22,759 nucleotides of DNA from Lepidodermella squamata (lineage: Eukaryota; Animalia; Gastrotricha), in NCBI GenBank assembly GCA_047495785.1, contig JBLDXI010000150.1:1-22759 (forward strand), given 5' to 3'. This document shows positions 1,116 to 22,759 of the stretch, one piece after another. Below the pieces are notes generated by a model. It did not search any database, was not told the origin of the DNA, and saw only the letters and a program-made list of their open reading frames with translations. Each line of letters starts with the position of its first letter. Positions within the stretch are counted from its first letter, which is position 1. A program made the translations under genes and the position numbers.

Positions 1116-1145
1116 TTGTCCCAATTTTGTCCCAAGTTGTCCCAA
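1116..1145. repeat. Three tandem copies of TTGTCCCAA
   Basis: Exact copies at 1116-1124, 1127-1135, 1137-1145. Confidence 0.8.
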
Positions 1146-1363
1146 TCGCAGCGTTATTAAACAATACCTATTATATGCACATAGTCTATAGCAAAATATC
1201 GTTGCCCATATCCAGGGATTTGTTTGCTTAATCTCATAATTAGATCGCCAGTTTTTTTCGGGTTAAATCACTTGGCATTTTGTTTACACTGTCAACCCAG
1301 TGCGTCAAGCTGCAGAGGATTCAAAGCATATTTATCCTGCTGTAAATAATTTCCTGTTAAAAA

Positions 1364-1735
1364 ATGGTTAAATCAATTCTGATCGTCTTTCTTGCCTTGT
1401 CGATTGTTGTTGGTAGCTTGAATGGCCTGACTTGCTACAAAGGCGAGGTGTCGTCGATGACGAGCTCATCGATTTCGATCAATCCGAGAGACCACGGCGA
1501 CCAGATTAAGCTGGAAAGTGGCTGTACCTCCTGCTCACGAACAATGAGCTCTACTACGTATCCACATCCATATTCGTCAATTGGATACGATTGTGAAAGT
1601 GACACGAGCGCATGTGGCGAAAAGATCATGGTCAACGTAATGGGGGCACCCGAAAATACGACACAATTTAGTTGCCAATGCTGCTCCGACAAGTGCAACG
1701 GCGAGGCTGGATGTCGCGTTAAATTTTGCCTCTAG
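1364..1735 (+). CDS. Small secreted cysteine-rich protein, Ly6/uPAR (three-finger/LU-domain)-like, 123 aa
   Basis: ATG in AAAAATG context; hydrophobic signal peptide MVKSILIVFLALSIVVGSLNG; mature start LTCY and C-terminal CQCCSDKCN match the LxCY...CCxxDxCN LU pattern; 11 Cys in mature part; AATAAA at 1859-1864. Confidence 0.7.
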   Translation: MVKSILIVFLALSIVVGSLNGLTCYKGEVSSMTSSSISINPRDHGDQIKLESGCTSCSRTMSSTTYPHPYSSIGYDCESDTSACGEKIMVNVMGAPENTTQFSCQCCSDKCNGEAGCRVKFCL

Positions 1736-2358
1736 TATTTCCACAGGCATCGCAACTCCCAGGTCATTCGCCGTTATTAAGTTGGACGATATCAGCTTAT
1801 GCTCTAGCATTGAACACTAATCCAACTCAACCGGTAATTGTAAATACCGCTGTAGAATAATAAAGTTTCCCCGTGAAAATTTCGAGTACATTTGGAGTTT
1901 TCTGCGATGTTACAGTGTTTCCTACAGTTTTTTTATTTTTTCATTCCTAATTTTGTTTGCGATCAAACAGTGGCGAAATAATATTGTCAACAAGTAAACG
2001 CGAAGGAAAAAATGTCGCGGCGCCTCACTACCGATTGCCAATGTCAAAGTCGTTAAGATAGAGATTATCGACCCTTGAACACCACAAGCTTTTAAGTAAC
2101 ACTAACTCCAACATAGTTACCTACTTCCATTCACTTTTTAGGTCACTTCAGGCTCAAACCAATCTTGGGCGGATCAAAACGGCTAAATTGAAGATCAAAA
2201 TGAAGCCTAATATTTTTATTTACTCCTTTATTTTGGAGCTTGAAAATTATCGTAAGAGGTGAATTGCGAAAATGATTTACTTGGGTACATCAAATTGCAG
2301 GCTCAAAGCTGATAATTTTAATATAGCATTGCGTTATTCAGTAAAAGAGCAACAATTC

Positions 2359-5300
2359 TTAGTTAGGGATAGCATCGATAGCAGCAATGAGCCCAGCCCA
2401 GACCTCGAGACCACTTGGGGTGATTTCAGACTCTGGCTGAACGAATCCGTTGATACTGTTCTTACCAGGGCGCAGCTCTAAGCAATAGCTGTACTTGATG
2501 CCCGCCACAGCCTTAGCCCAGTCGATCGAGCCACCAGAAGCTTCGTACAGGAGATCGACGATATTACCCGCCTTCCAGGTCTTTTTGTTAACAGCTTGAA
2601 GGGCAGCGACACCAACTTTCGCAACGCGTTCCTACGACATAGGTATCAATGAAAATGTTTTTTAACAGATTTAAAGCAAAAATCTCCTACCAGTTCGGTG
2701 TAATCAGAGGGCTTGCTGGTACCACTCTGTTTAACACCGTATGGGATCAACCAGTATTGCGAGTAGGTATGGAGAGAGAAATAAACACGGCTATTGTCCT
2801 TGTTAGCAAAGATGAAGTCGGACAGCGCCTTAGTCTCCGGCTCTGAAAAGGCTGACTTTCCACGGTAGGTATCAGAGCAAGGCTGTGAGCTGGCGCCAGA
2901 TGCTAGTATAAAGAAAAAACGAATGACACTTGCTTTTAGCTGAAACTTTCAATTACCTCCAAAGGTGTAGTTCCAGTTGCGGTTAGGATCAGCGCCAAGG
3001 CATGTTTTACTGCCGTAGTTCGAACGGGTTTTGCGCCACAAGCGCTCCTTTCGCGTGTATTCGTAGCCGTCTGGGTTTGAAACGGGGATGATGTACCAAT
3101 CGTAGGTGTCCAGCATCCGCTTAGCTTCAGGATCTTTCGAGTAAGTGTTGACCAAACGGTCGATAAGATAAACGACAGTGCCAACGGAGAGCCATTCTCT
3201 GTAATTTCAAAATACAATTAAGTTTTGGAACATTGTATTTTATAGCGGTGAGCTAAAAATATAAGTAGCAGCCTTATGAAAACCGTTTCCAGAAGTTTTC
3301 GATGATTTCCTTGACTAAGCATTAAGTGAGCCAATTCGAACTACAGTTAGGATGGCATCAATTAACACTTAGTTTAGAATAGAGTAGTTTCCTCTTTTAT
3401 ACATTTTGCGAAATTTCCTTTTCCTCTTTTGCAGTCGAATTTGGATAAAAAGAGCAGCGCAAAACGTTTTGTCTGCATGCTTGATTTTTTCGACAGTATC
3501 ATGTCTCTCAAAGTTGCTCTTCTTATAGCAATCACCGTCAAGCTCGCGAATGGTGCTAACAAGCCTTACTCACTACGACAGCTCAGCTTAACAACAATAC
3601 CAAGCGCAGATCCTAAGGTGTTTTACGCATCAGGATTGCCGTCGCAGCTAGTCTACGATAACATCAACAATCGTGATGACATTTTGCCAGGGTACCAGAT
3701 AATTCGTGACATAAGGGATGACAATTACGGTTATGCTGCTACAACTCGTTTGATAAGATTCCGCCAAGAATGGAATGGCTCAGAAGCGTATGGTGGTTAT
3801 CAATCCCCTGTTGTTATCGGGCCCCTTCTCTCCACTGGATGTCAAGCTATTGGTTCACTTCTCCCATACGTCAATAGCGTTGCTCTGTCAACGTACTGTA
3901 ATACTCCCTACCTAACTGAGCACAGTAGATATCCTAATCTATACCTTTCGATTACGACTTTCAAAACTTCAGCAGTAGCGAATCTTCGATTTATGCGCGA
4001 GGTAGGAGGCTGGAACAAATTCGCCATTATTGTAGAGTCATTCGGTGCAGTTTCAGACTTATCAATGGTTACCTATTTAAATGACAAGGCTGTGGAGAAT
4101 GGTTTCACTGTAACATGGTTGGATGTCCTAAAAAACGCGGACATTTCAATCCTCCTGAATTTGAAAGACTCTGGGGCACGAGTGATTTTCGCCATGATAT
4201 ACACGCAGTCTCTGGTCGCAGAATTTCTATGCGAGGCTTACAATATCGGAATGACGAAGCCGCGATATGTTTTCATAATTGCTAATACCCAATTCAGCTT
4301 TCTGGTCCCTCGACGGTGCACGCGGGAAATCATGGACATTCAGTGGCAGCAGGTATTTTTCTACGGCCCGATGTTTAAGCCACTTAACTACTCCAACGTT
4401 TGCGATTTGGGTTATACAGCTGCAGATTTCAGAGATAAAATGATGCGCATGTTGAACACAACTTCCGAGGATGACTTTTTATTTGCCTACACCCTTCATG
4501 ATGTTTCTTTGCGATCCGCCATGGTTCTGCACGAGTCTGAGCGACGACTACAGCGCTACTTTAACCTTACCTTGCGAGACTACCATCGCTACCCTGATCT
4601 TGTGTCAAAAGTTGTCAATCGCTCGATGCTTGAAACAAAGATTCGAGGGTTGAAAATTTCGGAAATGTCATTCAGCCCTAAAGGCCTTGGCCAGGGCGAT
4701 GTTGAATCGGTTTTTCAATGGACCCCCCAAAACGGTATGCAGCCCGTTAGCCTGATTCGATCGATCGTCAACGACAGCCTAGACGATTTCGACTACGCCA
4801 AGTACAAACTCGAAAATGTTGGAACCATAAAATGGCCGAATGGGAAGAGACCCCTTGATGGGGCAAAGGTTATCACATCCTTCCTTAGCCTAGACAGCGG
4901 AACTACTGGAACTTGCTGGGTTTTTATCATTTTAACCACGCTATTTCAAGCTGTATCTATTTTAATGATATTGTTAAGGAAACTACATCCAACAGATTAT
5001 GGGAATTCGAAAATACTAGCAACCGTTGGTTGTTTAATCATCAATTCGGCGGCAGCTTGCTTTATAACAGACAGAGGGCCAAGCTCCGGTAATACTGTTG
5101 CGGCTTCGATCTCATTACTAAGCCTAGGTGCCAGTATGGCACTCAGCACTGTGGCTTTTCGTTGGCTCGTCATTAAAAATTACATTAATAAAGCTCTATT
5201 GAAGCAGCGCAATGCGACTGGAAGTCGAGCTAATTCGAACTCGAATCTGAACAGGCTGGGTACCGTTATTTCATTTACAAGATCCTTATCGCCCTTTGGC

Positions 5301-6527
5301 ACAATATCCGATGGTCTAAACAAATTTGTTTTGACTTTCCCCACAAGTATTTGGACTGATTTTGACAAGCGAATCACGATTTCGACCGCTGTTTTCTCAG
5401 CTGGAGTCGCTATTATTGTAATAGCATGGCTGATATTGCAGGAAATAAGCTGTCAGGAAAAGCTTTTTGCTCCGCCTGTCTATTTTGAAAATGAAGACAC
5501 CTTTCTCGAATCAAGGTTCATAGACTGTGCAGTATACGGAACCTCTTCGTGGGGGCTGTTGGGCGCAATCACCGGAAGCGTTATCTTGCTGCTTTTAAGC
5601 GGTTTGATCGCAGCTTACAATTTGAAGCAGATCAAAGGGGTATCAGCTAACCTACGCGAAATTCTGTCGAGCTGGCTAGGGATTCTAGCGGGCGTGAGCC
5701 TATTTCCTGCAGCCGTGCTGATAGTTGTTGCTACAAATAGCGATCCTATCAAGCAACAGGCCGCGATAGCTTTTGTTTCAATCTTCATCTCACTTGTCAC
5801 TTCAGTTACCTGGATCTATCCTTGTTTCTACAAGGAGCGAAGACCTAAACCTTCTCTGAACGTGACACCTTCAAACAATAGACTTTCGGGGGGTTGAGAT
5901 GAAGTGTGAAACTTGAGCTATCATATTACCACGAAAAAATCTTATACAGAAGGTGATTGCATAAGAATAAAATGTATGTTAAGCTAACCTTGCATGCATG
6001 GTGCCTTCGATCCAGATTTTCTGCTTCGGGGAATCAGAGTCAGCGCCCAACTTGATCCACTTGAAGGTTCGCCCTTCAAATGACGTGCCCACATCGCCGC
6101 AGGTTGCCAATCCTGACTGCTGACTGCAAACCTCTTCAAGCCACGTGTTCAACGCGTCTACGGTAGGATAAGTCCCCACAATAGAGGCGCGGTTGTTACG
6201 GTTTTTCGCATCCTGTGCATTGACATTGTCAATCATTTCTTGAACATCACCGATCAACTGCTTGTACGGCATGTTTACGGTTTGCATCAAGTTGGTGAAC
6301 ATGGCAACTGAAGCCGCACCAACGTGAATATCAGCTGGGTTGTTGACATATGATGGCTCTTCCCAGTAGTCAAACTGATCCGACGGGGCGTCGAGGAATT
6401 GCCGCAGGATAGCTAGATGGTCCTCGGTTGCTGGGTACACCTGGAACACTTTGTCACCATTGTAGGTTTTGTCACCCGAGACAGCGGCTACAACAGCGAG
6501 AATGAGAATCAGAACTTTTGATGTCAT
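2359..6527 (-). CDS. Pro-carboxypeptidase A/B family (M14A), paralog CP1, 4 exons, ~421 aa
   Basis: Exons 6527-5989, 3198-2957, 2902-2691, 2631-2359 (1266 nt, in frame; all introns GT..AG: 2790, 54, 59 bp). Signal peptide, activation segment, HAR|E (His69/Glu72), LWRKTR (Arg127), DPNRNW (Asn144/Arg145), SLHTY (His196), LYEASGGSIDW (Tyr248, Ile255), YCLELR (Glu270), bovine CPA numbering. Confidence 0.92.
3501..5897 (+). CDS. Intronless class C GPCR, GABA-B-receptor-like (Venus flytrap domain + 7TM, no cysteine-rich domain), ~798 aa
   Basis: ORF 3429-5897; probable start ATG 3501 gives signal peptide MSLKVALLIAITVKLANGA (alternative ATG 3477). Flytrap motifs INNRDDILPGYQI, VIGP, RYPNLY, GWNKFAII, LKDSGARVIF, FLCEAY..G....YVF; stalk IKWPNGKRPLD; seven hydrophobic segments; AATAAA at 5966-5971. 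Confidence 0.85.
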   Translation: MSLKVALLIAITVKLANGANKPYSLRQLSLTTIPSADPKVFYASGLPSQLVYDNINNRDDILPGYQIIRDIRDDNYGYAATTRLIRFRQEWNGSEAYGGYQSPVVIGPLLSTGCQAIGSLLPYVNSVALSTYCNTPYLTEHSRYPNLYLSITTFKTSAVANLRFMREVGGWNKFAIIVESFGAVSDLSMVTYLNDKAVENGFTVTWLDVLKNADISILLNLKDSGARVIFAMIYTQSLVAEFLCEAYNIGMTKPRYVFIIANTQFSFLVPRRCTREIMDIQWQQVFFYGPMFKPLNYSNVCDLGYTAADFRDKMMRMLNTTSEDDFLFAYTLHDVSLRSAMVLHESERRLQRYFNLTLRDYHRYPDLVSKVVNRSMLETKIRGLKISEMSFSPKGLGQGDVESVFQWTPQNGMQPVSLIRSIVNDSLDDFDYAKYKLENVGTIKWPNGKRPLDGAKVITSFLSLDSGTTGTCWVFIILTTLFQAVSILMILLRKLHPTDYGNSKILATVGCLIINSAAACFITDRGPSSGNTVAASISLLSLGASMALSTVAFRWLVIKNYINKALLKQRNATGSRANSNSNLNRLGTVISFTRSLSPFGTISDGLNKFVLTFPTSIWTDFDKRITISTAVFSAGVAIIVIAWLILQEISCQEKLFAPPVYFENEDTFLESRFIDCAVYGTSSWGLLGAITGSVILLLLSGLIAAYNLKQIKGVSANLREILSSWLGILAGVSLFPAAVLIVVATNSDPIKQQAAIAFVSIFISLVTSVTWIYPCFYKERRPKPSLNVTPSNNRLSGG
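5966..5971 (+). promoter_or_regulatory. Probable polyadenylation signal of the nested GPCR
   Basis: AATAAA 68 nt after the stop codon and 17 nt before the host intron boundary at 5988. Confidence 0.6.
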
Positions 6528-6955
6528 GGTTTTTGGGGGCGATAGAAACAGAAACTTGGACTCTTCTCACTTCCGACACGCTTTAAAAAGGTAGCGATAA
6601 GGTTTTGGCAATTGCCTCACGCCCTTAAGTCTTATCAAATTATTGCCGTCGTTTTTTTGTAACCTCAGCTTCCGGGACTGAGTGCGAGTTGGTGCCTCAA
6701 TTCGTTGCTTATCTTGGCTAATTATCCAAAGGTCACACGGCGGCGCTGCATTTCCCCTAATTTAAATCCGAGGTACTGTTGTAAAAAAATTACTGATGCC
6801 AAATTTGGATAAACCTTCTGATAACTCTCCTCGATCACAAAGCAAATTGTGAGTATAAAGCCCGAGAAAACTTGAAATGACCTAAATTATCTTGAGAACA
6901 AAATGATGGATTCATGTAGTGCTTTCGGTTTATTTTGTGTGTTTTAAGAGCAAGC

Positions 6956-8266
6956 TCAATCTGGAATAGCATCGATAGCAGCGATGAGACCAGCCCAGAC
7001 TTCGCGACCACTCGGGTCGATTTCCGAGGTGGGTTGGACAAAACCACTCATACTGCCAGAGGATGGGCGCAGTTCGAGGCAGTACGTGTATTTGATGCCA
7101 GCAACAGCTTTCGCCCAGTCTTGCGAAACTCCTGATGCTTCATACAGCAGATCAACAATTGTTCCAGTTCGCCACGTACGGCCGTTAACCGCCATCAAAG
7201 CTCTAGCCCCGGCATCAGCAACTCGTAGCTGCAGAAATCAATGACAACTAGTCAGTTCAATACCAAAATAACCTACCAATTCGTTGTAGTCGGTCGGTTT
7301 AGGTCTGAAACCCCAGGAAATCAGCCATAGCTGAGAAAAGGAATGGATTGAAAAGTAAACTCGTGTGTTGTCCTTATTAGCCAATATGAAATCAGCCAGA
7401 GCCTTGACTTCTGGCTCCGAAAACGCATTAGGACCAGCATAGGTGTCTGAGCAAGGATTGTTACTGGCCCCACTGCCACCCCACTTGTAGTCCCAATTAC
7501 GATTAGGATCCACCCCAAAACAAGTTGTTGTCTGTTTTGAGCGAGTTTTGCGCCATAGTCGCTCGCGAAGTCGGCTGAACTCGTAACCATCAGGATTTGA
7601 CAGTGGAATGATGTACCAGTCGTAGTTGTCCAACATCCTTCTAGAAACAGGATCGGTGTTATATTGATTCAATAAACGATCGATGATGTAGACAACGGTG
7701 CCAGTTGACAGCCATTCTCGAGCATGCATAGTGCCCTCAATCCAAATTTTCTGCTTCTTCACGCCCTTTTGAGCAGGCGCGCCTAGTTTAATGTATTTAA
7801 TTACACGATCTTCAGTCGATGTTCCGACATCGCCGCATTCAGCCAAACCGGGGTTTCCAATGCATAAACTTTCCAACCAACTATTAAGTTGATCGTAAGT
7901 TGGATAAGTGTTAACAATTCTGTCATTTGAATAGCTTTGAGCTTGGCTCTTAGCGTCAACCTCATCAATCAGTTCTTGAACATCCGGAACAGCGATTGAA
8001 TAAGCGATTTTTGTGACATTTAACAAATTCAAGAATTTCGGAATTGTTTTCGAATCGATTCTAATGTCCACTTTTGTGTTGATTGCAACGGGTTCGGACC
8101 AAAAGTCGTATTGGTCGGATGATTCATCTTGAAGAGACCGAATCAGCTCGAGTTGATCGACGGATGTCGGAAATAGCCGGAAAACCTGATCACCCCGATA
8201 GCTTCTCTGCTGTGCAAATGCGAAGCTTGAAAGAATACCGATAGTTAAAAATAGCTTGAAAATCAT
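6956..8266 (-). CDS. Pro-carboxypeptidase A/B family (M14A), paralog CP2, 2 exons, ~420 aa
   Basis: Exons 8266-7277 and 7228-6956; 48-bp intron GTAGGT..CTGCAG. Signal peptide, HARE, LWRKTR, DPNRNW, SIHSF, LYEASGVSQDW, YCLELR; minus-strand AATAAA at 6929-6934. Confidence 0.93.
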
Positions 8267-8423
8267 TTTTCTGCACGAGAAAATGATGAACTTTAGGGGA
8301 CTAGGAGATGGTATCTCACATTAACCCTTAGAGAGATAAGGAACGCTGTAAAAAATGGCTGCCAATTTTTATCTCGAAAATTCTCGATTATTTACTTGTT
8401 CTGCGTCATGATTAAAAAATAGA

Positions 8424-9878
8424 TCAAGCTCGATATAGCGTTCTATTCATAGCATTAACAGCCGCGGCAAGCCCGGCAAACACTTCTTTCCCACTTGGCT
8501 CAATATCGGACTCAGTGGCTCTGAAGCCTCCATTAGAACCGGCTCGAAGTTCCAAGGTATAGACGTATTTCGCCCCAGTCGCCTTTTTCGTCCAATCGTC
8601 AGAGCCGCCAGACGCTGGGCCGTAGATATCCATCGTATTTCCGCACTGCCAAGGTCTGTTGTTAACGGCGGACAGGGCCTTCGTTCCAATATTAGCGACT
8701 CGCAACATCTCGTTGTAGTCAGGGCCGTAACGTTGGTCTTCAGGGCCAGCTCCAAAGGGTACGAACCAAGTTTCCGCGTACGTATGAATCGAAAAATACG
8801 CCAGTAAATTGGCTTTGTTAGCTAGGACAAAGTTAGACCAGCTACGACTTTCAGGCTCGGAAAATGCGCGCTTGCCCTGGTAGACCTCGCTAGAAGGGTT
8901 GGTACTCGCTCCAGATCCTGCAAAAATCGTCGATGAGAAAATTTGAAATTTAGATCATGAACAATTTACCGCCAAAGTCGAAATCGAAATTGCGGTTGAG
9001 ATCAACGCCAACGTAAAGCGGGGTTCTTGAATCTTTCGATCGATTTTTTCGCCACATTCTGTCCCGTGTCTGGCTGTAGGTATATCCGTCGGGATTTAAC
9101 ATGGGTAAAATGATCCAGTTGAAATTAGAGAGAAGTTCTTTCACGGATCTTTCATTGCTGGTTACCAACTAAATTTTGAAGACAATTTAGATCTAAAGTC
9201 GAAAAATTAGGTTGATTTCAAACCTTATTGATCATGTAGATAATCGTCGCTGGGGACAACCATTCCCTGGCATGTGCGCCCCCTTCAATAATTACCGTGG
9301 GTTGGCTCCAGTTGCCTATCTAGAATGAAAATATGGTTAATAAATTTTAATTTCTCCTTCGAGACATTACATACCTGGATGTATCGTAGATCTCTTTGTT
9401 CGAAGGATTTACCAACACTGCCGCATTTTGTTGAATTTCTGTAAGATTCGCAAATCGAATCTAGCCAAGCCACAATATTGCTGTAAGTAGGGAATTTCTT
9501 CACAACCAGTGAATTGAGATCAGTGGCTTTTATGGAAGCCCTCAAAAGCCTGGGCTCATCTGCATTTTCCTGCTTTTCATTATCAATCAGTGCTTGCAGG
9601 TCGTTGATCGTAATGTTGAAGGGAATTCGTGCTTGATTAGCTTGGCGAATGAAATCTTGAACTGAACCAGCTTTCACTCGAACATCGACCCCTCGACCAG
9701 GTCTACTTGGGGCGAGCCAGAAGTCAAAGTCATCTTTATCAACGAATTGCTCCAAAAAGCTGACTTGTTGCTGAGTTTTCGGTTCGAAATGGAACACCTT
9801 CTCGCCGGTGTAGTCGTAATAGGCCAAGCTTCCGACCACAAAGAAGCAGCAAAGGAGTAGGACATTTATATAGGGCAT
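8424..9878 (-). CDS. Pro-carboxypeptidase (M14A), paralog CP3, CPB-like Asp255, 4 exons, ~430 aa (left-arm copy)
   Basis: Exons 9878-9375, 9319-9224, 9168-8970, 8917-8424 (1293 nt, in frame, GT..AG introns of 55, 55, 52 bp). Signal peptide, GAHAREW, MWRKNR, DLNRNF, SIHTY, IYGPASGGSDDW, YTLELR. Confidence 0.92.
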
Positions 9879-10780
9879 TTTCCGGTAACGATATTCTAGA
9901 CTTATTTTTTCTGCAAAGGCAGTGATAAATACAAAAAACCGCTATATAAATACGTTCAGGTCGAGCGCGTTAGAAGAAAAAACGCGCGGTTCCGTGTTAT
10001 GACGAAAAAAAGTATGAAGGATGAATAATGAGTGGGCTGTGGTAAATATCTAGCGTGTCAAGCACGAATTTACGTGGGTTCTTAACTGCGAAGAGCATGT
10101 GTGAGGGTAATCAGATATTGAGATTTTTGTCTTGTGAGCATAAATTATCCGAAAATAATTTCGGTCGACAGAGCCCTTATATGGCTAGTTTTTTTTAGTT
10201 ATAGTGCATTTTGTCTGCAGTTCGATGCTGTGTTTTACCATGCAGCGAGTACGAGCATGAGGTCAGTTACTCTGTTACCCTCACCCTTCCTGAAAATCGT
10301 GAAGTAGAAGGCGATATAGTTAGTTGCCAAGTAAGGGACCGGCAGTACTAGCGCATATTTTTAGAAATGACAGTAACGCTATATTAGTGTAGGTTACAAT
10401 TGCGGAGCGGTTGAATTCTAAATCCTAAATCACTATCTTCGGTTCAAGGGCTATAAAAATGCCATTAGCTGCTATCTTGTGTTCTCATCCATTCTTGAAC
10501 TCTTGGAGAGAAAAGAGAATTCGGTTTCTTTTTCTATCCTTCGTCAAGTATTCTGACGCTCTTCATAAATTCTGCGATCAAAGATGTGTAACGGGCAGCA
10601 AACAGGTGCCGTTTATTTATCTTTATTCTCAAGGCGCAGCAAAATACCTAATTGAAAATGGGGCAATGAAACCTTGAAAAAACTGTTCATCAGACGTCGC
10701 CAATCGCCAAGGTCGAAAATGTATACTGCTAACTGCTAAGAACATATAATCCCAATAGACTCTCACATGAATCTACAGTT

Positions 10781-13700
10781 TCAAAAACAATGTTTCTGAA
10801 AATATCTATAATAATCAATGAAATCTGCCGACTCTGTAACGCGGGCGCTTGTTGTAAGAAGAAATAGTGCCGGTTTCGCTGTCACTGCTCCAGCCTTCCG
10901 CAGACTGTAAATTGCCGGCGGATAGTTGGAAATCAGTGCCAAATCTAGTGGAGTAAAGCCATCGTCATTTCTCGCGTTGATATCCGCACCAGCCTCTATC
11001 AACCCATCAATATTACTTGTGTACCAATCGGATTCTATCATGTGCAATAGAGAATTTCCGCGTTGATATTTTCGATTGACATCATAACCCTTCTGTACGA
11101 GGAATTTTGCGAAACCGTAATCCCGATTGGTGCTTGCAACAATAGTTAGGCAGGTGTTGTTGTCTTTGTTCTGCGAATTTACATTCATACCATGAATCTC
11201 GACAAGCCATTTGGCCAGTGAGAAACTCTCAAGAGGTCCACTCATACACGCCAGTAAAAATGCATTATTGCCTTCGTAGTCGACAGCCGTCAAATTCGAG
11301 CCTTCGTCCAGTAGTAATTCAACCATTGCATGGTTATATTGACGAGCTGCGGACAAAAGCGGAGTTAGCCCAGAGGAGTCGCGTTCTTCGAGGCCAATTT
11401 TAGCTTTCCTAATCAGGAATCTTGCAAGTTCGTCATCGCTTCTGTAAACAGCTAGATGCAAGAGAGTGCCATTCGGTTGCCATCCCGAATTAACCCTAAC
11501 TCGGCCATCAGCCCCTTTTGATAACAAGTATTCGAAAACTTGGAAGCGATCCGCTGATTTCAAGTGCATCACCGCGATTGCAAATGGGGGCAATCCATCC
11601 AAATATACAGAAGTGACCGAATTTTCAGCTTCCTCAACAGCGAATTTCACCATAGGTAGAGCTGGGGTCTCAGTGGTTCGACAAGCTTCTGAAAGCATAG
11701 AGTACAGTTCATTCGTAGCTCCCTTTGACATTAGGAATTTAACGATTTCTAGACTTTTAGAAGCAGCGTATGTAATTGCCGCCCTGTCGTTGTATACCAG
11801 GTCAACGTCTGCTCCATATTTTACGAGCAATTTGACAAGATCAACACGACCCATCTCAGCTGCGAGCATTAGGGCGGATTTTCTAGCCGAGGGATGAATC
11901 GCATTCGCATCGCCATCGTTTTCGAGTAGCACTTGAAGCATTTCCAGAGAAGGATTTTCTACGAACATTGCAGCGGAAACTGCTGGGACAGGTATTAGTT
12001 CGATTCGCCCCAAACAAAGAGCGTAATAATCGTCAGGAACCATAAGAGCGGCATCACCGCGCGCTTGATTGAGACGTATCATCTCACGTACAGCAGAGAT
12101 GTTACCATCTATAACGTAGTTCACAAATTTCTGAAAAAATATGAGAGAGAACAGATGTATAAAAACGTAGATATATTGGAAAGAGAACACCGCTAAATAT
12201 TACAGCCATATTTAGGAATAAGCTGGGGGTCAAAAATTAGGTGAGCTAATTGATGATTCATCGGTTGATTTCAGAAACAAATTCGTTATTTCATTGAAAG
12301 TAAGAGCCCAATATTACCCACTTTTCTAAAATCGTGAACTTTCTCATATGATTGAGTTATCAGTTATCACCTTGCAATTCAAACTGACTCACTACACTAC
12401 GTCACGGTAACAGATATCACATCTCTACCAGCATAATAAAGAAAACTCACAGCGTTGAGCCTATCCTGATTTTGATTCCGAACAGTGCTTTTAACATATT
12501 GTGTCGTTGTCAACTTCGGAGTTGTAGTTGATCTCGCCCCCGATATAATCTCAGTGACAAGCTGCTGTAGGCCAAAATCATCGTTGGGCGTTAACGATCG
12601 GTTAGTACTTGCGGTGAAATTAAGCAGTTTCACCGTAATTGCCGAAGACATTTCTGTTGTTGAATTATGACGATAGTTCGCAGTGGTTGCTCCTAACTCT
12701 TGGGCCGAAACTGCTCTCTGCAAATCGACCTTGCTGATTGGAACAGAGAGATCCAAAGCTGTTTCGCCTTGATAATTTGTCGCATTCACATCAGCCCCCA
12801 TGTCTAGTAAGGCCAGTACTACCCGCCTTCTATTACTTGAAGAAGCAGCTGACATTAGTGGCGTATAACCATAAGGTCCGGACTTGGCGTTGATAGCATA
12901 GCCTTTACTGACCAAATATTTCAGTATGTCGACGATAACCGTGTCGTCAACCTGAATGCCACCTCGCCACTGTAGGTGATAGTCACAAGGGGTTCCATAT
13001 TTAGTCGTCTTTGATTTGGCATCATTTCCGCCTATTTCAACGGCGAATTTTATGAAGGTTAAGATACCCAATTCAGTCTTATCGATCTGACAAGCCTGAA
13101 GCAGCATGTTACTGCCTTCATTATTTTTCGCCTGTTTATGAGCTCCTTGATCAACGAGGTACTGGAGTAAAGCTAGAGAATAGCCAGTTTTAGCTGCGAT
13201 GAGTAACGGCGTGTTGCCTTCGTTATCCCTCGCATGGACATCCATTTTGAACTGTTCGATCAGCAATTTCGCAATAGGGACAGGATCAGTCGATTGCACT
13301 CGGCTGAGAAGGTGAAGAGCGGTTAAACCGTTGGAATTCGTGTCATTCGGCGATTCAAACGGCAACAAGTAGTAGACTAATCTTAAATAATCAGGGGTTA
13401 CTTCGCCATCGAAAGCAGCCATCAAAGCTGTGTTGTTTCGGCTGTCTCGGACATCAGTCACTGCATTGTACTGTTCAACAAGGAGTCTCACCAGATCCAA
13501 CCGGCCGTTTCTTGCAGCCCAGAGGTATGCGCTCCTAACTTGAGCACTTCCATCCCTCGCTTCGACGGAGGCCCCTTTTAGTAGGAGAAACTCAACCATT
13601 TCGTAGCTTTGGTTAGTCCGCACTGCGCTGACAAGCGCTGAGGATTTCGAAGTTGAATTTGCGTTAACCAGACCTGAGTTGACCATTTGGCGAACGGTTG

Positions 13701-13861
13701 GCAGTTGTCCCGAGACTACGGCTTCGTTGAAGGCCTGAATTAAGACTTTCATTGTGCATTGTGAATATGGAACACAAATTTACGCTTTCATTGCCAACAT
13801 TTTTGAAACATGTGATGGGTGCGATGAAACAAGTTAAAAAACAAATGAATATCGACTTCAT
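10781..13861 (-). CDS. Signal-peptide-bearing ankyrin-repeat protein with two ANK arrays and a Ser/Thr-rich linker, 3 exons, ~903 aa (left-arm copy)
   Basis: Exons 13861-13784, 13734-12451, 12130-10781. About 20 ankyrin repeats (e.g. GNTPLLIAAKTG, GYTPLMSAA..LLDMGADVNA, GLTPLLSAAR, GADINARNDDGFTPLDLA). Phase-0 GT..AG introns of 49 and 320 bp. Ankyrin identity is secure; joining the two large ORFs into one gene is a prediction. Confidence 0.78.
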
Positions 13862-14547
13862 AATGTTCTAAATTGATGACAATGGGAAAATAACGAATGC
13901 AGTGGTGATTGTGCCAAATGCAGGATATTTCGTTCTTTTCACCTAAATCGTGAAGCGATTACGGCTTGGGAAGATTTTTCGCTGAAAATGGCGATCCAGT
14001 CCTCATAACTTGACTGAAACACAACTATAAAAAATTCCGAATTAAGCTTCACTGTTTTTTACTTGACTGCTGTTTTCTTAAATTAAGTGAAGAATGTAAA
14101 AAACTTTCTTACAAGCTATTTTTCAGGCATTCCTAGAGCTTTAACTACGTAGATCACATCACGAAAACGTGTAGCATGACAAAGGTTGATATATGATATT
14201 ATGTGTTCATCAAAATAAAGCCTTTATTAGGCTATCGGAAAGCTAATCTGAATCCTATAGAATCCCATGAGAATGATATACCTATTGGAAAGTGACAACT
14301 TGAGACCATGGTTTCATTTGAAAAAAATTCACAGGCTACTTTTTGTTTATTCTTGTAATTGTCGAAACTGCGCAATAATTCAAGAAGTGGGAATTCTCCA
14401 AATAAAAGAAAGTTTCCGAAACAATTTGATATAAAAAATCACTTGAGGTTGGGACAGTCAATTAACTACTGTTTTTACATCAAAAGAGAAAATCCCATCC
14501 CACCATTCACAAGTTAATGAAACAGACTCCGAACAGGTTCACAGCGC

Positions 14548-15606
14548 TTACCGAATCCGCACCACTGTTAGAAAACGTACAGCGCTCGATAGTCTGAGGG
14601 CGATTGGTTCATTTTTTGCAGTCATAGCCAGCGCGACGAGCATCACGTTCATTGAAACAACGAGTAACGCCAACACCGAAACCAATATCACTAGCAAAGA
14701 GCTGCTGGACCCGACCAGAACACCGACCAGCACACCAGCAATTATAAAAATGACCAGAGTGTAGATGAACATGTAATCGTATTTCAACTCATTCATTATG
14801 GTGATCAGTCGCAGGTTTCTCGATCGTTTAGGTACAATCGTTTTGCCTAGGATTGATCGGGCCTTGAATGCTAGTAGAATTGCACGAATTAATGAGGCAA
14901 TCATGACAAATCCAGCAGCGGATACCAATCCAGTGGTCGTATTTGATGAAAGAATCGATTCAATGACCAGGCATTCCTGAACTTGGAAATTGAAGGCCAA
15001 GCTTCTATCTGTCTTGGAGTACTCTAAAGATGTGTTTCTCAAGACAGTCTCAATAGGGTGACTAAAAAGCGCTACTGCAAATAGTGTCACGGGAATTAAT
15101 ATTTGGCCGAGTAATAATGCCGCTGTGGTAAATTTCAACTTGACCACCCTTGGGTACCTTTTCACCCCTAAAATATTGTTATTGATTCTGTGAGAACTCG
15201 CCGCAATCAAGCTGGAGAATCCAAGGACAACGATAATTCCGATGGCAGAGCAATGCAACGCCACACCTTGACTTGAAATAGTATAAGGAATAGCAAAGAT
15301 TTGGCAGGCCAATACAAAGTCAGATATCAGGATTGTAGCCAACCAGTGATTGAGACGGCGCTTACGAGATGAGAAGAAGGCAACAATTGCTATACTGCCA
15401 ATTGCTGAACATCCGGAAACGTAGAAGACGATGCTGATACTAGGCGATATTAGAGGTTTTTCAATATTGACTAGAATAAGACGGTCCCTAGGAGCTTTCC
15501 CGTCATTGGTACGCCAAATGAACCTTGCGTGGTTGATTTGAGTTTTCTCGCCCTTTAAGTTTGATTTGTAGAAAGCAACTGGCTCCTGAACGCTCCTGTT
15601 GCCGTC
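14548..15606 (-). CDS. 5'-truncated class C (GABA-B-like) GPCR: end of flytrap domain, stalk and 7TM, ~352 aa of open frame
   Basis: The minus-strand frame stays open through the whole palindrome loop (DGNRSVQEPVAFYKSNLKGEKTQINHARFIWRTNDGKAPRDRLILVNIEKP). IW..DGKAPRD matches the stalk motif IKWPNGKRPLD of the other GPCR. Seven TM segments with TM3 Cys (ALHC), ECL2 Cys (QECL) and NELK before TM6. Upstream the frame hits TAA at 15609-15607, just past the junction. Confidence 0.78.
   Translation of the reverse strand, partial: DGNRSVQEPVAFYKSNLKGEKTQINHARFIWRTNDGKAPRDRLILVNIEKPLISPSISIVFYVSGCSAIGSIAIVAFFSSRKRRLNHWLATILISDFVLACQIFAIPYTISSQGVALHCSAIGIIVVLGFSSLIAASSHRINNNILGVKRYPRVVKLKFTTAALLLGQILIPVTLFAVALFSHPIETVLRNTSLEYSKTDRSLAFNFQVQECLVIESILSSNTTTGLVSAAGFVMIASLIRAILLAFKARSILGKTIVPKRSRNLRLITIMNELKYDYMFIYTLVIFIIAGVLVGVLVGSSSSLLVILVSVLALLVVSMNVMLVALAMTAKNEPIALRLSSAVRFLTVVRIR
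15485..15601. other. 117-bp unique loop of the palindrome (GPCR coding sequence on the minus strand)
   Basis: Complementarity ends at G15484/C15602 (T15485 vs G15601 mismatch). The loop translates in frame with the minus-strand GPCR. Confidence 0.93.
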
Positions 15607-16538
15607 TTATTCTAGTCAATATTGAAAAACCTCTAATATCGCCTAGTATCAGCATCGTCTTCTACGTTTCCGGATGTTCAGCAATTGGCAGTATAGCAAT
15701 TGTTGCCTTCTTCTCATCTCGTAAGCGCCGTCTCAATCACTGGTTGGCTACAATCCTGATATCTGACTTTGTATTGGCCTGCCAAATCTTTGCTATTCCT
15801 TATACTATTTCAAGTCAAGGTGTGGCGTTGCATTGCTCTGCCATCGGAATTATCGTTGTCCTTGGATTCTCCAGCTTGATTGCGGCGAGTTCTCACAGAA
15901 TCAATAACAATATTTTAGGGGTGAAAAGGTACCCAAGGGTGGTCAAGTTGAAATTTACCACAGCGGCATTATTACTCGGCCAAATATTAATTCCCGTGAC
16001 ACTATTTGCAGTAGCGCTTTTTAGTCACCCTATTGAGACTGTCTTGAGAAACACATCTTTAGAGTACTCCAAGACAGATAGAAGCTTGGCCTTCAATTTC
16101 CAAGTTCAGGAATGCCTGGTCATTGAATCGATTCTTTCATCAAATACGACCACTGGATTGGTATCCGCTGCTGGATTTGTCATGATTGCCTCATTAATTC
16201 GTGCAATTCTACTAGCATTCAAGGCCCGATCAATCCTAGGCAAAACGATTGTACCTAAACGATCGAGAAACCTGCGACTGATCACCATAATGAATGAGTT
16301 GAAATACGATTACATGTTCATCTACACTCTGGTCATTTTTATAATTGCTGGTGTGCTGGTCGGTGTTCTGGTCGGGTCCAGCAGCTCTTTGCTAGTGATA
16401 TTGGTTTCGGTGTTGGCGTTACTCGTTGTTTCAATGAACGTGATGCTCGTCGCGCTGGCTATGACTGCAAAAAATGAACCAATCGCCCTCAGACTATCGA
16501 GCGCTGTACGTTTTCTAACAGTGGTGCGGATTCGGTAA
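15603..16538 (+). pseudogene. Mirror copy of the GPCR 7TM region with no genuine 5' end
   Basis: Identical to the minus-strand copy from RLILVNIEKP onward. The ORF-track N-terminus (TTG 15561, MICRKQLAPERSCC) is antisense loop sequence. Confidence 0.65.
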
Positions 16539-17224
16539 GCGCTGTGAACCTGTTCGGAGTCTGTTTCATTAACTTGTGAATGGTGGGATGGGATTTTCTC
16601 TTTTGATGTAAAAACAGTAGTTAATTGACTGTCCCAACCTCAAGTGATTTTTTATATCAAATTGTTTCGGAAACTTTCTTTTATTTGGAGAATTCCCACT
16701 TCTTGAATTATTGCGCAGTTTCGACAATTACAAGAATAAACAAAAAGTAGCCTGTGAATTTTTTTCAAATGAAACCATGGTCTCAAGTTGTCACTTTCCA
16801 ATAGGTATATCATTCTCATGGGATTCTATAGGATTCAGATTAGCTTTCCGATAGCCTAATAAAGGCTTTATTTTGATGAACACATAATATCATATATCAA
16901 CCTTTGTCATGCTACACGTTTTCGTGATGTGATCTACGTAGTTAAAGCTCTAGGAATGCCTGAAAAATAGCTTGTAAGAAAGTTTTTTACATTCTTCACT
17001 TAATTTAAGAAAACAGCAGTCAAGTAAAAAACAGTGAAGCTTAATTCGGAATTTTTTATAGTTGTGTTTCAGTCAAGTTATGAGGACTGGATCGCCATTT
17101 TCAGCGAAAAATCTTCCCAAGCCGTAATCGCTTCACGATTTAGGTGAAAAGAACGAAATATCCTGCATTTGGCACAATCACCACTGCATTCGTTATTTTC
17201 CCATTGTCATCAATTTAGAACATT

Positions 17225-20200
17225 ATGAAGTCGATATTCATTTGTTTTTTAACTTGTTTCATCGCACCCATCACATGTTTCAAAAATGTTGGCAATGAAA
17301 GCGTAAATTTGTGTTCCATATTCACAATGCACAATGAAAGTCTTAATTCAGGCCTTCAACGAAGCCGTAGTCTCGGGACAACTGCCAACCGTTCGCCAAA
17401 TGGTCAACTCAGGTCTGGTTAACGCAAATTCAACTTCGAAATCCTCAGCGCTTGTCAGCGCAGTGCGGACTAACCAAAGCTACGAAATGGTTGAGTTTCT
17501 CCTACTAAAAGGGGCCTCCGTCGAAGCGAGGGATGGAAGTGCTCAAGTTAGGAGCGCATACCTCTGGGCTGCAAGAAACGGCCGGTTGGATCTGGTGAGA
17601 CTCCTTGTTGAACAGTACAATGCAGTGACTGATGTCCGAGACAGCCGAAACAACACAGCTTTGATGGCTGCTTTCGATGGCGAAGTAACCCCTGATTATT
17701 TAAGATTAGTCTACTACTTGTTGCCGTTTGAATCGCCGAATGACACGAATTCCAACGGTTTAACCGCTCTTCACCTTCTCAGCCGAGTGCAATCGACTGA
17801 TCCTGTCCCTATTGCGAAATTGCTGATCGAACAGTTCAAAATGGATGTCCATGCGAGGGATAACGAAGGCAACACGCCGTTACTCATCGCAGCTAAAACT
17901 GGCTATTCTCTAGCTTTACTCCAGTACCTCGTTGATCAAGGAGCTCATAAACAGGCGAAAAATAATGAAGGCAGTAACATGCTGCTTCAGGCTTGTCAGA
18001 TCGATAAGACTGAATTGGGTATCTTAACCTTCATAAAATTCGCCGTTGAAATAGGCGGAAATGATGCCAAATCAAAGACGACTAAATATGGAACCCCTTG
18101 TGACTATCACCTACAGTGGCGAGGTGGCATTCAGGTTGACGACACGGTTATCGTCGACATACTGAAATATTTGGTCAGTAAAGGCTATGCTATCAACGCC
18201 AAGTCCGGACCTTATGGTTATACGCCACTAATGTCAGCTGCTTCTTCAAGTAATAGAAGGCGGGTAGTACTGGCCTTACTAGACATGGGGGCTGATGTGA
18301 ATGCGACAAATTATCAAGGCGAAACAGCTTTGGATCTCTCTGTTCCAATCAGCAAGGTCGATTTGCAGAGAGCAGTTTCGGCCCAAGAGTTAGGAGCAAC
18401 CACTGCGAACTATCGTCATAATTCAACAACAGAAATGTCTTCGGCAATTACGGTGAAACTGCTTAATTTCACCGCAAGTACTAACCGATCGTTAACGCCC
18501 AACGATGATTTTGGCCTACAGCAGCTTGTCACTGAGATTATATCGGGGGCGAGATCAACTACAACTCCGAAGTTGACAACGACACAATATGTTAAAAGCA
18601 CTGTTCGGAATCAAAATCAGGATAGGCTCAACGCTGTGAGTTTTCTTTATTATGCTGGTAGAGATGTGATATCTGTTACCGTGACGTAGTGTAGTGAGTC
18701 AGTTTGAATTGCAAGGTGATAACTGATAACTCAATCATATGAGAAAGTTCACGATTTTAGAAAAGTGGGTAATATTGGGCTCTTACTTTCAATGAAATAA
18801 CGAATTTGTTTCTGAAATCAACCGATGAATCATCAATTAGCTCACCTAATTTTTGACCCCCAGCTTATTCCTAAATATGGCTGTAATATTTAGCGGTGTT
18901 CTCTTTCCAATATATCTACGTTTTTATACATCTGTTCTCTCTCATATTTTTTCAGAAATTTGTGAACTACGTTATAGATGGTAACATCTCTGCTGTACGT
19001 GAGATGATACGTCTCAATCAAGCGCGCGGTGATGCCGCTCTTATGGTTCCTGACGATTATTACGCTCTTTGTTTGGGGCGAATCGAACTAATACCTGTCC
19101 CAGCAGTTTCCGCTGCAATGTTCGTAGAAAATCCTTCTCTGGAAATGCTTCAAGTGCTACTCGAAAACGATGGCGATGCGAATGCGATTCATCCCTCGGC
19201 TAGAAAATCCGCCCTAATGCTCGCAGCTGAGATGGGTCGTGTTGATCTTGTCAAATTGCTCGTAAAATATGGAGCAGACGTTGACCTGGTATACAACGAC
19301 AGGGCGGCAATTACATACGCTGCTTCTAAAAGTCTAGAAATCGTTAAATTCCTAATGTCAAAGGGAGCTACGAATGAACTGTACTCTATGCTTTCAGAAG
19401 CTTGTCGAACCACTGAGACCCCAGCTCTACCTATGGTGAAATTCGCTGTTGAGGAAGCTGAAAATTCGGTCACTTCTGTATATTTGGATGGATTGCCCCC
19501 ATTTGCAATCGCGGTGATGCACTTGAAATCAGCGGATCGCTTCCAAGTTTTCGAATACTTGTTATCAAAAGGGGCTGATGGCCGAGTTAGGGTTAATTCG
19601 GGATGGCAACCGAATGGCACTCTCTTGCATCTAGCTGTTTACAGAAGCGATGACGAACTTGCAAGATTCCTGATTAGGAAAGCTAAAATTGGCCTCGAAG
19701 AACGCGACTCCTCTGGGCTAACTCCGCTTTTGTCCGCAGCTCGTCAATATAACCATGCAATGGTTGAATTACTACTGGACGAAGGCTCGAATTTGACGGC
19801 TGTCGACTACGAAGGCAATAATGCATTTTTACTGGCGTGTATGAGTGGACCTCTTGAGAGTTTCTCACTGGCCAAATGGCTTGTCGAGATTCATGGTATG
19901 AATGTAAATTCGCAGAACAAAGACAACAACACCTGCCTAACTATTGTTGCAAGCACCAATCGGGATTACGGTTTCGCAAAATTCCTCGTACAGAAGGGTT
20001 ATGATGTCAATCGAAAATATCAACGCGGAAATTCTCTATTGCACATGATAGAATCCGATTGGTACACAAGTAATATTGATGGGTTGATAGAGGCTGGTGC
20101 GGATATCAACGCGAGAAATGACGATGGCTTTACTCCACTAGATTTGGCACTGATTTCCAACTATCCGCCGGCAATTTACAGTCTGCGGAAGGCTGGAGCA

Positions 20201-20305
20201 GTGACAGCGAAACCGGCACTATTTCTTCTTACAACAAGCGCCCGCGTTACAGAGTCGGCAGATTTCATTGATTATTATAGATATTTTCAGAAACATTGTT
20301 TTTGA
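17225..20305 (+). CDS. Mirror copy of the signal-peptide ankyrin-repeat gene
   Basis: Exons 17225-17302, 17352-18635, 18956-20305; donors GTAAAT (17303) and GTGAGT (18636); acceptors TTAATTCAG (ends 17351) and TTTTTTCAG (ends 18955); AATAAA at 20459 and 20469. May not exist in vivo if the arm is an artefact. Confidence 0.68.
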
Positions 20306-21207
20306 AACTGTAGATTCATGTGAGAGTCTATTGGGATTATATGTTCTTAGCAGTTAGCAGTATACATTTTCGACCTTGGCGATTGGCGACGTCTGATGAA
20401 CAGTTTTTTCAAGGTTTCATTGCCCCATTTTCAATTAGGTATTTTGCTGCGCCTTGAGAATAAAGATAAATAAACGGCACCTGTTTGCTGCCCGTTACAC
20501 ATCTTTGATCGCAGAATTTATGAAGAGCGTCAGAATACTTGACGAAGGATAGAAAAAGAAACCGAATTCTCTTTTCTCTCCAAGAGTTCAAGAATGGATG
20601 AGAACACAAGATAGCAGCTAATGGCATTTTTATAGCCCTTGAACCGAAGATAGTGATTTAGGATTTAGAATTCAACCGCTCCGCAATTGTAACCTACACT
20701 AATATAGCGTTACTGTCATTTCTAAAAATATGCGCTAGTACTGCCGGTCCCTTACTTGGCAACTAACTATATCGCCTTCTACTTCACGATTTTCAGGAAG
20801 GGTGAGGGTAACAGAGTAACTGACCTCATGCTCGTACTCGCTGCATGGTAAAACACAGCATCGAACTGCAGACAAAATGCACTATAACTAAAAAAAACTA
20901 GCCATATAAGGGCTCTGTCGACCGAAATTATTTTCGGATAATTTATGCTCACAAGACAAAAATCTCAATATCTGATTACCCTCACACATGCTCTTCGCAG
21001 TTAAGAACCCACGTAAATTCGTGCTTGACACGCTAGATATTTACCACAGCCCACTCATTATTCATCCTTCATACTTTTTTTCGTCATAACACGGAACCGC
21101 GCGTTTTTTCTTCTAACGCGCTCGACCTGAACGTATTTATATAGCGGTTTTTTGTATTTATCACTGCCTTTGCAGAAAAAATAAGTCTAGAATATCGTTA
21201 CCGGAAA

Positions 21208-22662
21208 ATGCCCTATATAAATGTCCTACTCCTTTGCTGCTTCTTTGTGGTCGGAAGCTTGGCCTATTACGACTACACCGGCGAGAAGGTGTTCCATTTC
21301 GAACCGAAAACTCAGCAACAAGTCAGCTTTTTGGAGCAATTCGTTGATAAAGATGACTTTGACTTCTGGCTCGCCCCAAGTAGACCTGGTCGAGGGGTCG
21401 ATGTTCGAGTGAAAGCTGGTTCAGTTCAAGATTTCATTCGCCAAGCTAATCAAGCACGAATTCCCTTCAACATTACGATCAACGACCTGCAAGCACTGAT
21501 TGATAATGAAAAGCAGGAAAATGCAGATGAGCCCAGGCTTTTGAGGGCTTCCATAAAAGCCACTGATCTCAATTCACTGGTTGTGAAGAAATTCCCTACT
21601 TACAGCAATATTGTGGCTTGGCTAGATTCGATTTGCGAATCTTACAGAAATTCAACAAAATGCGGCAGTGTTGGTAAATCCTTCGAACAAAGAGATCTAC
21701 GATACATCCAGGTATGTAATGTCTCGAAGGAGAAATTAAAATTTATTAACCATATTTTCATTCTAGATAGGCAACTGGAGCCAACCCACGGTAATTATTG
21801 AAGGGGGCGCACATGCCAGGGAATGGTTGTCCCCAGCGACGATTATCTACATGATCAATAAGGTTTGAAATCAACCTAATTTTTCGACTTTAGATCTAAA
21901 TTGTCTTCAAAATTTAGTTGGTAACCAGCAATGAAAGATCCGTGAAAGAACTTCTCTCTAATTTCAACTGGATCATTTTACCCATGTTAAATCCCGACGG
22001 ATATACCTACAGCCAGACACGGGACAGAATGTGGCGAAAAAATCGATCGAAAGATTCAAGAACCCCGCTTTACGTTGGCGTTGATCTCAACCGCAATTTC
22101 GATTTCGACTTTGGCGGTAAATTGTTCATGATCTAAATTTCAAATTTTCTCATCGACGATTTTTGCAGGATCTGGAGCGAGTACCAACCCTTCTAGCGAG
22201 GTCTACCAGGGCAAGCGCGCATTTTCCGAGCCTGAAAGTCGTAGCTGGTCTAACTTTGTCCTAGCTAACAAAGCCAATTTACTGGCGTATTTTTCGATTC
22301 ATACGTACGCGGAAACTTGGTTCGTACCCTTTGGAGCTGGCCCTGAAGACCAACGTTACGGCCCTGACTACAACGAGATGTTGCGAGTCGCTAATATTGG
22401 AACGAAGGCCCTGTCCGCCGTTAACAACAGACCTTGGCAGTGCGGAAATACGATGGATATCTACGGCCCAGCGTCTGGCGGCTCTGACGATTGGACGAAA
22501 AAGGCGACTGGGGCGAAATACGTCTATACCTTGGAACTTCGAGCCGGTTCTAATGGAGGCTTCAGAGCCACTGAGTCCGATATTGAGCCAAGTGGGAAAG
22601 AAGTGTTTGCCGGGCTTGCCGCGGCTGTTAATGCTATGAATAGAACGCTATATCGAGCTTGA
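21208..22662 (+). CDS. Mirror copy of pro-carboxypeptidase CP3
   Basis: Exons 21208-21711, 21767-21862, 21918-22116, 22169-22662; mirror of 8424-9878. TATA-like TATTTATATAG at 21134-21144. May not exist in vivo if the arm is an artefact. Confidence 0.8.
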
Positions 22663-22759
22663 TTATTTTTTAATCATGACGCAGAACAAGTAAAATAATC
22701 GAGAATTTTCGAGATAAAAATTGGCAGCCATTTTTTACAGCGTTCCTTATCTCTCTAAG

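Follow-up and report, generated by a model that had tools for sequence, protein, structure and literature searches.

The contig C150 of the gastrotrich Lepidodermella squamata, which at its full length of 22,759 bp is the window analysed here, contains a gene (10781-13861, - strand) whose exons specify a hydrophobic leader followed by two long arrays of ankyrin repeats. We think it probable that this is one real three-exon gene whose leader takes the product into the endoplasmic reticulum (ER), that the product is an extracellular scaffold with two ankyrin arms, and that a second copy of the gene, on the + strand of the same contig, is an artefact of assembly. A secreted ankyrin protein of this kind had been proposed in an earlier reading of the same DNA from its letters alone (the original prediction). 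New here are the family-wide tests of both introns, the finding that the ankyrin exons mostly have no start codon of their own, the conserved N-glycosylation sequons, the placement of the gene as an ancient singleton and the recognition of the fold-back.

Gene structure and the leader-exon family

The conceptual product of the gene has ~903 residues and consists of a 26-residue leader, a 10-repeat solenoid, a linker, a 12-repeat solenoid and a short tail (Table 1). The original prediction, which was drawn up on the + copy, had placed a leader exon at 17225-17302 followed by a 49-nucleotide (nt) phase-0 intron, as well as a GTGAGT donor at 18636 and a pyrimidine-rich acceptor at 18955 that join the two ankyrin open reading frames (ORFs) in frame. 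Each of these elements is present in the sequence at those positions.

A search of the genome, a 121-Mb assembly in 151 contigs, with the arm encoded by exon 2 gave ~28 further near-full-length matches at 52-62% amino acid identity, plus ~25 fragments and stop-bearing copies. Most family members are in tandem arrays on contigs C23 (0.40-0.64 Mb and 0.96-1.04 Mb) and C54. We took 27 paralog loci, all of which were run through one automatic model builder; the amino acid identity of these paralogs to the window gene is 50-59% for exon 2 and 49-56% for exon 3. At every one of the 27 loci we detected a hydrophobic, ATG-initiated exon that spans 22-35 codons and ends at a strong donor (GTAAGA in most cases); a 46-60-nt phase-0 intron follows, with its acceptor at the same codon, after which exon 2 begins A-F-N-Q/E. 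A typical paralog leader reads M-I-S-I-Y-V-I-L-F-E-I-C-F-x-G-A-I-I-H-A-R-A-I-D-Y-D-S. Paralogs with the same signal-exon layout, which the original prediction had named as an object for a genome search, were thus found at 27 of 27 loci. With the window gene included, the layout is present at 28 of 28 loci, as compared with ~1% of shuffled upstream regions scanned with the same finder. Since paralog loci in the same genome share its layout, the leader exon of the window gene is not a chance ORF.

Start codons and stop codons around the first intron also speak for the leader exon. An in-frame ATG is found closely 5' of exon 2 in only five of the 28 loci, and at one of these five the ATG is that of the leader itself, with the intron between them in frame. 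At 17 of the 28 loci the TAG of the acceptor is itself an in-frame stop codon. Because ATG codons are so scarce and the acceptor TAG is a stop, the ankyrin exon of most members is untranslatable from its own 5' end. The second intron is also widely kept: its position and phase are the same in 24 of the 27 paralog loci, with lengths of 53-1223 nt, exon 2 of the paralogs ending ..L-N/I-S↓GTAGGT (↓ here marking the exon-intron junction) and exon 3 starting K/E-F-A/V. We conclude that the three-exon gene model is very probably secure, even when it is judged from sequence conservation rather than from RNA. ORF-based or naive gene calls would miss the 26-codon leader exon and would split the protein into two "cytosolic" ankyrin ORFs.

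The window gene and the family share the leader mini-exon, the short phase-0 intron, arm 1, the Ser/Thr linker, the phase-0 second intron and arm 2. The window gene differs in its location, standing alone between carboxypeptidase genes and a gene for a multi-span membrane protein, whereas the family is mostly in arrays. It differs also in the end of its leader (..CFKNVGNES, as opposed to ..ARAIDYDS in the family) and in its C-terminus, which is without the poly-Thr and GWPGWK tail of the family. Synonymous divergence (dS) between the window gene and every other member is saturated at ~2, and nonsynonymous divergence (dN) is ~0.35. As judged from these sequence comparisons, the window gene diverged long ago from the rest of a lineage-specific family of ~30 genes, in which it is a singleton. 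Adjacency to carboxypeptidase genes is confined to the window member; since this is a solitary outlier, positioned outside the arrays, the carboxypeptidase neighbourhood looks incidental to the family.

Part of the family is present in near-identical pairs. Between C23 (0.99-1.04 Mb) and C54 (0.07-0.14 Mb), a region that includes loci L030-L042, such gene pairs are found in the same order, with dS of 0.02 for L039/L040, 0.08-0.13 for L034/L037 and 0.13 for L031/L032. C54 may represent the alternative haplotype of the C23 array, or a segmental duplication may have taken place recently, and given this near-identity the family counts may be inflated.

Several paralogs have poly-Thr tracts of up to 13 residues near their end, followed by a conserved G-S-S-P-S-L-G-G-W-P-G-W-K end, and in several the Ser/Thr runs are 9-13 residues long and the tails contain 40-55% Ser plus Thr. 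The exon 3 3' ends of L033, L034, L037, L038, L042, L019, L030, L031 and L039 include several with both poly-Thr and the conserved GSSPSLGGWPGWK motif. In some paralog tails a stop within the Thr tract removes the GSSPSLGGWPGWK motif, the remnant of which is still legible in the 3' region, and the tail of L031 contains a 21-nt tandem repeat. The paralog tail evolves by slippage. We looked for a C-terminal membrane anchor or a fourth exon and found neither, the paralogs ending at the stop codon and then AATAAA. At a further ankyrin locus, L043 (C64:294001-299500, - strand), exons for a trypsin domain (4642-5166) and a Sushi domain (~4470-4643; PF00084, E 3e-7) share one strand with an ankyrin ORF of 949 amino acids (1537-4386), within ~1 kb, and we count this arrangement in favour of a secretory route.

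Evidence for a secretory route and for two ankyrin arms

In a heuristic reading, the leader of the window gene has Lys2, an unbroken run of 17 uncharged residues (13 of them strongly hydrophobic), Pro15 and I-T-C↓F at -3/-1. Its best 8-residue hydropathy is 2.84, and the leaders of the three neighbouring procarboxypeptidases, which belong to a family of secreted zymogens, reach 2.76-3.83. Positive charge precedes the hydrophobic run, and the residues past it are neutral to negative; by the positive-inside rule, this distribution predicts that the ankyrin arms are luminal, whether the leader is cleaved or not. In the mechanism that we propose, the leader would take the nascent chain into the ER with the N-terminus remaining cytosolic, and cleavage would probably take place near residue 18. 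Both ankyrin arms would then be luminal and N-glycosylated at the conserved sequons, the linker would be O-glycosylated, and the protein would reach the outside of the cell, in released or displayed form, and serve there as a scaffold in which two rigid ankyrin solenoids on a flexible linker could each bind a protein partner.

The leader might instead be an uncleaved signal anchor, in which case the product would be a type II membrane protein with luminal or extracellular arms that is held in the membrane and not released. The 17-residue hydrophobic run is long for the core of a signal peptide, paralog leaders having 17-19 residues; the lone -3/-1 site ends in Cys; and Pro15 is the sole helix breaker. 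However, the paralogs carry a good I-H-A↓R-A cleavage motif straight after the hydrophobic run, and a 17-residue run broken by Pro (in the paralogs, by Glu) is short for a stable span. We regard the signal anchor as distinctly unlikely. On the evidence of the leader and of the features described below, the protein likely enters the secretory pathway; given such entry, soluble release would be quite likely and retention by an uncleaved anchor unlikely. The original prediction of no clear transmembrane helix agrees with our scan of the product outside the leader, where no 19-residue window reaches a membrane-span score, the top hydropathy being 1.55, in a folded or loop region. At the C-terminus, ..YFQKHCF, we found neither an ER-retention signal nor a hydrophobic end of the glycosylphosphatidylinositol (GPI) type.

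About 13 sequons had been claimed for the product, and the count is exactly 13, with one in exon 1, eight in exon 2 and four in exon 3. For five sequons, conservation reaches at least 80% of family members; these are NQS41 and NAT317 in arm 1 and those at positions 10, 220 and 324 in arm 2, all of which the window gene has. Across the family we observed 264 sequons versus 194 expected from composition, a 1.36-fold excess. Poly-Thr tracts are typical of O-glycosylated extracellular proteins.

The presence of sequons and of Thr tracts bears on the alternative that the protein is cytosolic, either because exon 1 is skipped, with the ATG at 17334 or an internal Met serving as the start codon, or because the N-terminus tethers cytosol-facing arms to an organelle membrane. 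Animal ankyrin repeats are textbook intracellular modules that are overwhelmingly cytosolic, and both the window gene and its allele on contig C13 have an in-frame ATG 18 nt 5' of exon 2 (17334 on the + strand; 13752 on the - strand). Of the 28 loci, 23 are nevertheless without this ATG, and every one of the 28 has the leader exon. The charge balance of the leader predicts translocation of the C-terminal part, and the conserved sequons, together with the poly-Thr tails of the paralogs, argue in the same direction. We consider a cytosolic product quite improbable.

Both large exons encode ankyrin repeats. A Pfam scan of the two exons returned ankyrin models only and assigned them to the ankyrin-repeat families (PF12796, PF00023 and PF13637), with Ank_2 scoring 118 bits in arm 1 (E 2.6e-34) and 164 bits in arm 2 (E 9.5e-49) against a cut-off of 27.3. 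We ran AlphaFold separately for each arm, using alignments of the window sequence with 23 (arm 1) or 21 (arm 2) family sequences. Arm 1 is modelled as 10 helix pairs, with a predicted local distance difference test (pLDDT) score of 78, and the first pair begins at residue 2 of exon 2; residues 348-428 score below 50 and are disordered. Arm 2 is modelled as 12 helix pairs with a pLDDT of 82. The models show both arms folding as ankyrin solenoids, and the roughly 20 repeats of the original prediction become 10 + 12 = 22 helix-pair repeats. Invariant Cys residues are positioned one repeat apart in each arm (C215 and C250 in arm 1, C295 and C327 in arm 2). Disulfide bonds between neighbouring repeats might link these pairs, as would suit an oxidising compartment.

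Between the arms, the Ser/Thr linker that had been described as mucin-like is present and contains 30% Ser plus Thr over 80 amino acids, but with 2% Pro and a longest Ser/Thr run of four it is only mildly mucin-like. Across the family, Ser plus Thr make up 26-41% of the linker versus 11-14% of the ankyrin bodies.

Several observations weigh against an extracellular protein. Splicing and secretion are predicted from conservation and heuristics. In many paralog leaders the hydrophobic run is interrupted midway by Glu, His or Gln, and a basic n-region is absent, which weakens a textbook signal-peptide call. The 1.36-fold excess of sequons is modest and was counted over paralogs that are not independent; in addition, a structural role in the ankyrin repeat may account for some of the conserved Asn and Thr. 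In the window gene itself, the linker is only weakly mucin-like and there is no poly-Thr tail, and the mature protein would have an odd number of Cys residues (seven). Nothing indicates a particular ligand. The extracellular two-armed binder of the original prediction is retained in part: there are two ankyrin arms, and the leader, the conserved sequons and the Ser/Thr-rich parts favour the secretory route, but neither a diversifying face nor gene-wide positive selection was seen. The roles suggested there, in immune or symbiont recognition or as an inhibitor or a toxin, are conjectural.

The probable fold-back of C150 and the C13 allele

C150 contains a perfect inverted repeat with arms at 8415-15484 and 15602-22671, which are 7070 nt long, 100% identical and separated by a 117-nt spacer. 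Beyond these limits the two halves continue to match as far as the contig end, interrupted in the final 90 nt only by two 1-nt indels. By blastn, positions 1-15607 of the window are colinear with one stretch of C13 at 95-96% identity, and positions 15602-22758 match the same stretch in the opposite orientation. A genome-wide DNA search located the ankyrin locus only in the two C150 arms and once in C13 (97%). The haplotype-like C13 copy differs by 3-4%, and the C150 arms differ from each other by zero over 7070 nt. Since the C13 locus is single-copy and colinear, the spacer is its normal continuation and the palindrome reaches the contig end, it is very likely, from sequence comparison, that C150 is a small contig from an alternative haplotype or a very recent duplication, with a fold-back chimera making up its right third. 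The + copy being a fold-back, there is one gene in the window and not two; the two mirror copies of the original prediction do not stand, the second being a fold-back of the first, and C13 has one copy.

Inverted duplications with short unique spacers do occur, and the palindrome could be biological, a recent inverted duplication in one haplotype that left two head-to-head gene copies. Such an origin is very improbable. It would have to account for the lack of any difference between the arms, for a repeat that stops precisely where the contig, one of the smallest, itself stops, its last 90 nt showing indel noise, and for a spacer of ordinary downstream sequence alongside a colinear, single-copy C13 locus. 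In addition, the fold-back truncates the ORF of the multi-span membrane protein. We conclude that a fold-back chimera is the better description of C150. Small terminal contigs can be chimeras of this type, doubling the apparent gene count.

The membrane-protein ORF, at 15561-16538 (+) and 14548-15342 (-), has no Pfam match, is cut by the fold-back point and is 99.5% identical to C13. Its first 40 nt on the + strand read the spacer in the wrong sense; hence, the N-terminus of the + ORF is chimeric in C150. The window also carries genes of animal type, namely three procarboxypeptidases of the M14 family, which have activation peptides, and a receptor ORF in which an ANF_receptor domain was identified.

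The window and C13 copies of the ankyrin gene are both open, and the leader exon and intron 1 are identical between them. For exon 2 the two copies differ with a dS of 0.09 and a dN of 0.019 (ratio 0.2), and for exon 3 with a dS of 0.036 and a dN of 0.023 (ratio 0.63; 34 changes). Family-wide, pairwise dN/dS is 0.25-0.45. These comparisons show that the gene is intact in both haplotype-like copies and, as estimated from the substitution ratios, under purifying selection. Pairwise dN/dS across the family and the alleles, with all values below 1, gave no support for gene-wide positive selection. We also rejected a hypervariable binding face, since the helices are conserved and the variability is in ordinary turns and loops. 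Neither variability nor dN/dS provided evidence that would suggest a diversifying repertoire in the subfamily of the window gene.

Relative to C13, a 1-nt indel at 20277 changes the last eight codons only. It is the sole frame-changing difference, and it lies within a putative 45-nt in-frame intron at 20246-20290 (mirror 10796-10840), in which case it would be silent. This segment, the last 15 codons before ..KHCF, starts with GT and ends with a pyrimidine-rich TTTCAG, and could be spliced out; its donor, GTTACA, is weak. The divergence between the window and C13 is a mosaic: identity is 99-100% in the leader exon, in both introns of the ankyrin gene and in the membrane-protein ORF, and 95-96% in the ankyrin exons, the receptor ORF and the carboxypeptidase exons. 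Introns that are more conserved than exons are unusual, and may reflect recombination or gene-conversion tracts.

Table 1. Features of the ankyrin gene and of the inverted repeat in contig C150 (- strand features with their positions on the + copy; ↓ marks a predicted cleavage point)
Feature	Position	Strand	Position on + copy	Description	Basis
Exon 1	13784..13861	-	17225-17302	26-codon leader: Met-Lys, 17-residue uncharged hydrophobic run, then ..ITC↓FKNVGNES	translation
Intron 1	13735..13783	-	17303-17351	49 nt, GTAAAT donor, TTCAG acceptor, phase 0	sequence
Exon 2	12451..13734	-	17352-18635	ankyrin arm 1 (10 helix-pair repeats, residues 1-348) and 80-residue disordered Ser/Thr-rich linker	
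Intron 2	12131..12450	-	18636-18955	320 nt, GTGAGT donor, TTTTTCAG acceptor, phase 0	sequence
Exon 3	10781..12130	-	18956-20305	ankyrin arm 2 (12 helix-pair repeats), short C-terminal tail and stop codon (20303-20305 on + copy)	
Two AATAAA polyadenylation-type hexamers	10612..10627	-	20459-20474	~155-170 nt past stop; consensus match only	
Gene on fold-back arm	17225..20305	+		100% identical to - strand gene	
Palindrome arm 1	8327..15484			continuous with unique left part of contig	
Spacer	15485..15601			117 nt, ordinary genomic sequence continuing arm 1 in C13 order	blastn vs C13
Palindrome arm 2 (fold-back)	15602..22759			perfect to 22671, then two 1-nt indels	

Comparison with known ankyrin proteins

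We searched 1.84 billion representative proteins, among which this genome's own proteins are absent, with HMMER and found nothing above 42% identity and no single-stretch score at the level of a paralog. A word search with the exon 2 arm gave generic ankyrin matches only, at 26-30% identity. The neighbouring carboxypeptidase has named relatives from many phyla, none above 42% identity, and this limit suggests that the animal is from a poorly sampled lineage. Searches for an SL1 RNA and for the N domain of nematode cuticle collagens gave nothing; since they were silent in the controls as well, this is weak evidence, on which a nematode looks unlikely. The assembly yielded no COX1. In a literature search for secreted or extracellular ankyrin families in animals, we found no described family. 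The suggestion that the family may be undescribed thus holds against public proteins (at most 42% identity) and the literature searched.

The best word matches, 12 bacterial or metagenome ankyrin proteins (P0001-P0012), recall the family in having a signal peptide and then a long ankyrin array; in 9 of the 12 the N-terminal signal peptide is clear and the array follows directly. They differ in having a single array, a length of 614-741 amino acids, no linker and no introns, and their 26-30% identity is the generic ankyrin level. Four of the signal-bearing proteins have a ..R-S-I-D-E/Q-E/D-F-L.. start, which loosely recalls the ..R-A-I-D-Y-D-S↓A-F-N.. of the family (↓ here marking the exon junction). 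At this generic sequence similarity, no descent linking the two groups was evident.

Latrotoxins have ~20 ankyrin repeats and act outside the cell that produces them. They have a large N-terminal helical pore-forming region, are not known to have a classical signal peptide and are processed at both ends. By contrast, in the window protein the leader is followed at once by the ankyrin array, with no domain of another type. Delta-latroinsectotoxin (PDB 7pty) aligns through its ankyrin part only, at Foldseek rank 31. Since the N-terminal non-ankyrin region is absent, as seen with both Pfam and AlphaFold, we ruled out that the window protein is a latrotoxin.

With canonical ankyrins the window protein shares a 12-repeat solenoid fold, arm 2 matching AnkB R13-24 and the AnkR D34 region with a template-modelling score of 0.65-0.72 in Foldseek, and in both cases long arrays can be regarded as platforms for protein binding. 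The canonical proteins are cytosolic adaptors between membrane and cytoskeleton, with ZU5, UPA and death domains and without a leader, and their identity to the window arm is ~21%. The top structural matches of arm 2 are designed ankyrin repeat proteins (DARPins), in which the ankyrin fold works as an extracellular binder. DARPins are synthetic, with 4-6 repeats and a randomised binding face, whereas the window family is without a comparable hypervariable face.

If our explanation is true, a conserved family of ~30 genes in which ankyrin repeats follow a secretory leader, together with conserved sites for glycosylation and segments that resemble mucins, would widen the known uses of the ankyrin fold and would be a natural counterpart to the engineered DARPins. 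A broader and speculative proposal, to which we assign a low probability, is that an animal lineage has moved the ankyrin solenoid outside the cell at scale. It would then possess a germline repertoire of dozens of glycosylated two-armed binders, together with protease-Sushi-ankyrin fusions, that recognise microbes, food or self, and the window singleton, conserved and non-redundant among them, would bind a fixed ligand. Such a repertoire, if real, would be the ankyrin-based counterpart of the receptor repertoires that are based on leucine-rich repeats (LRR) and on immunoglobulin domains.

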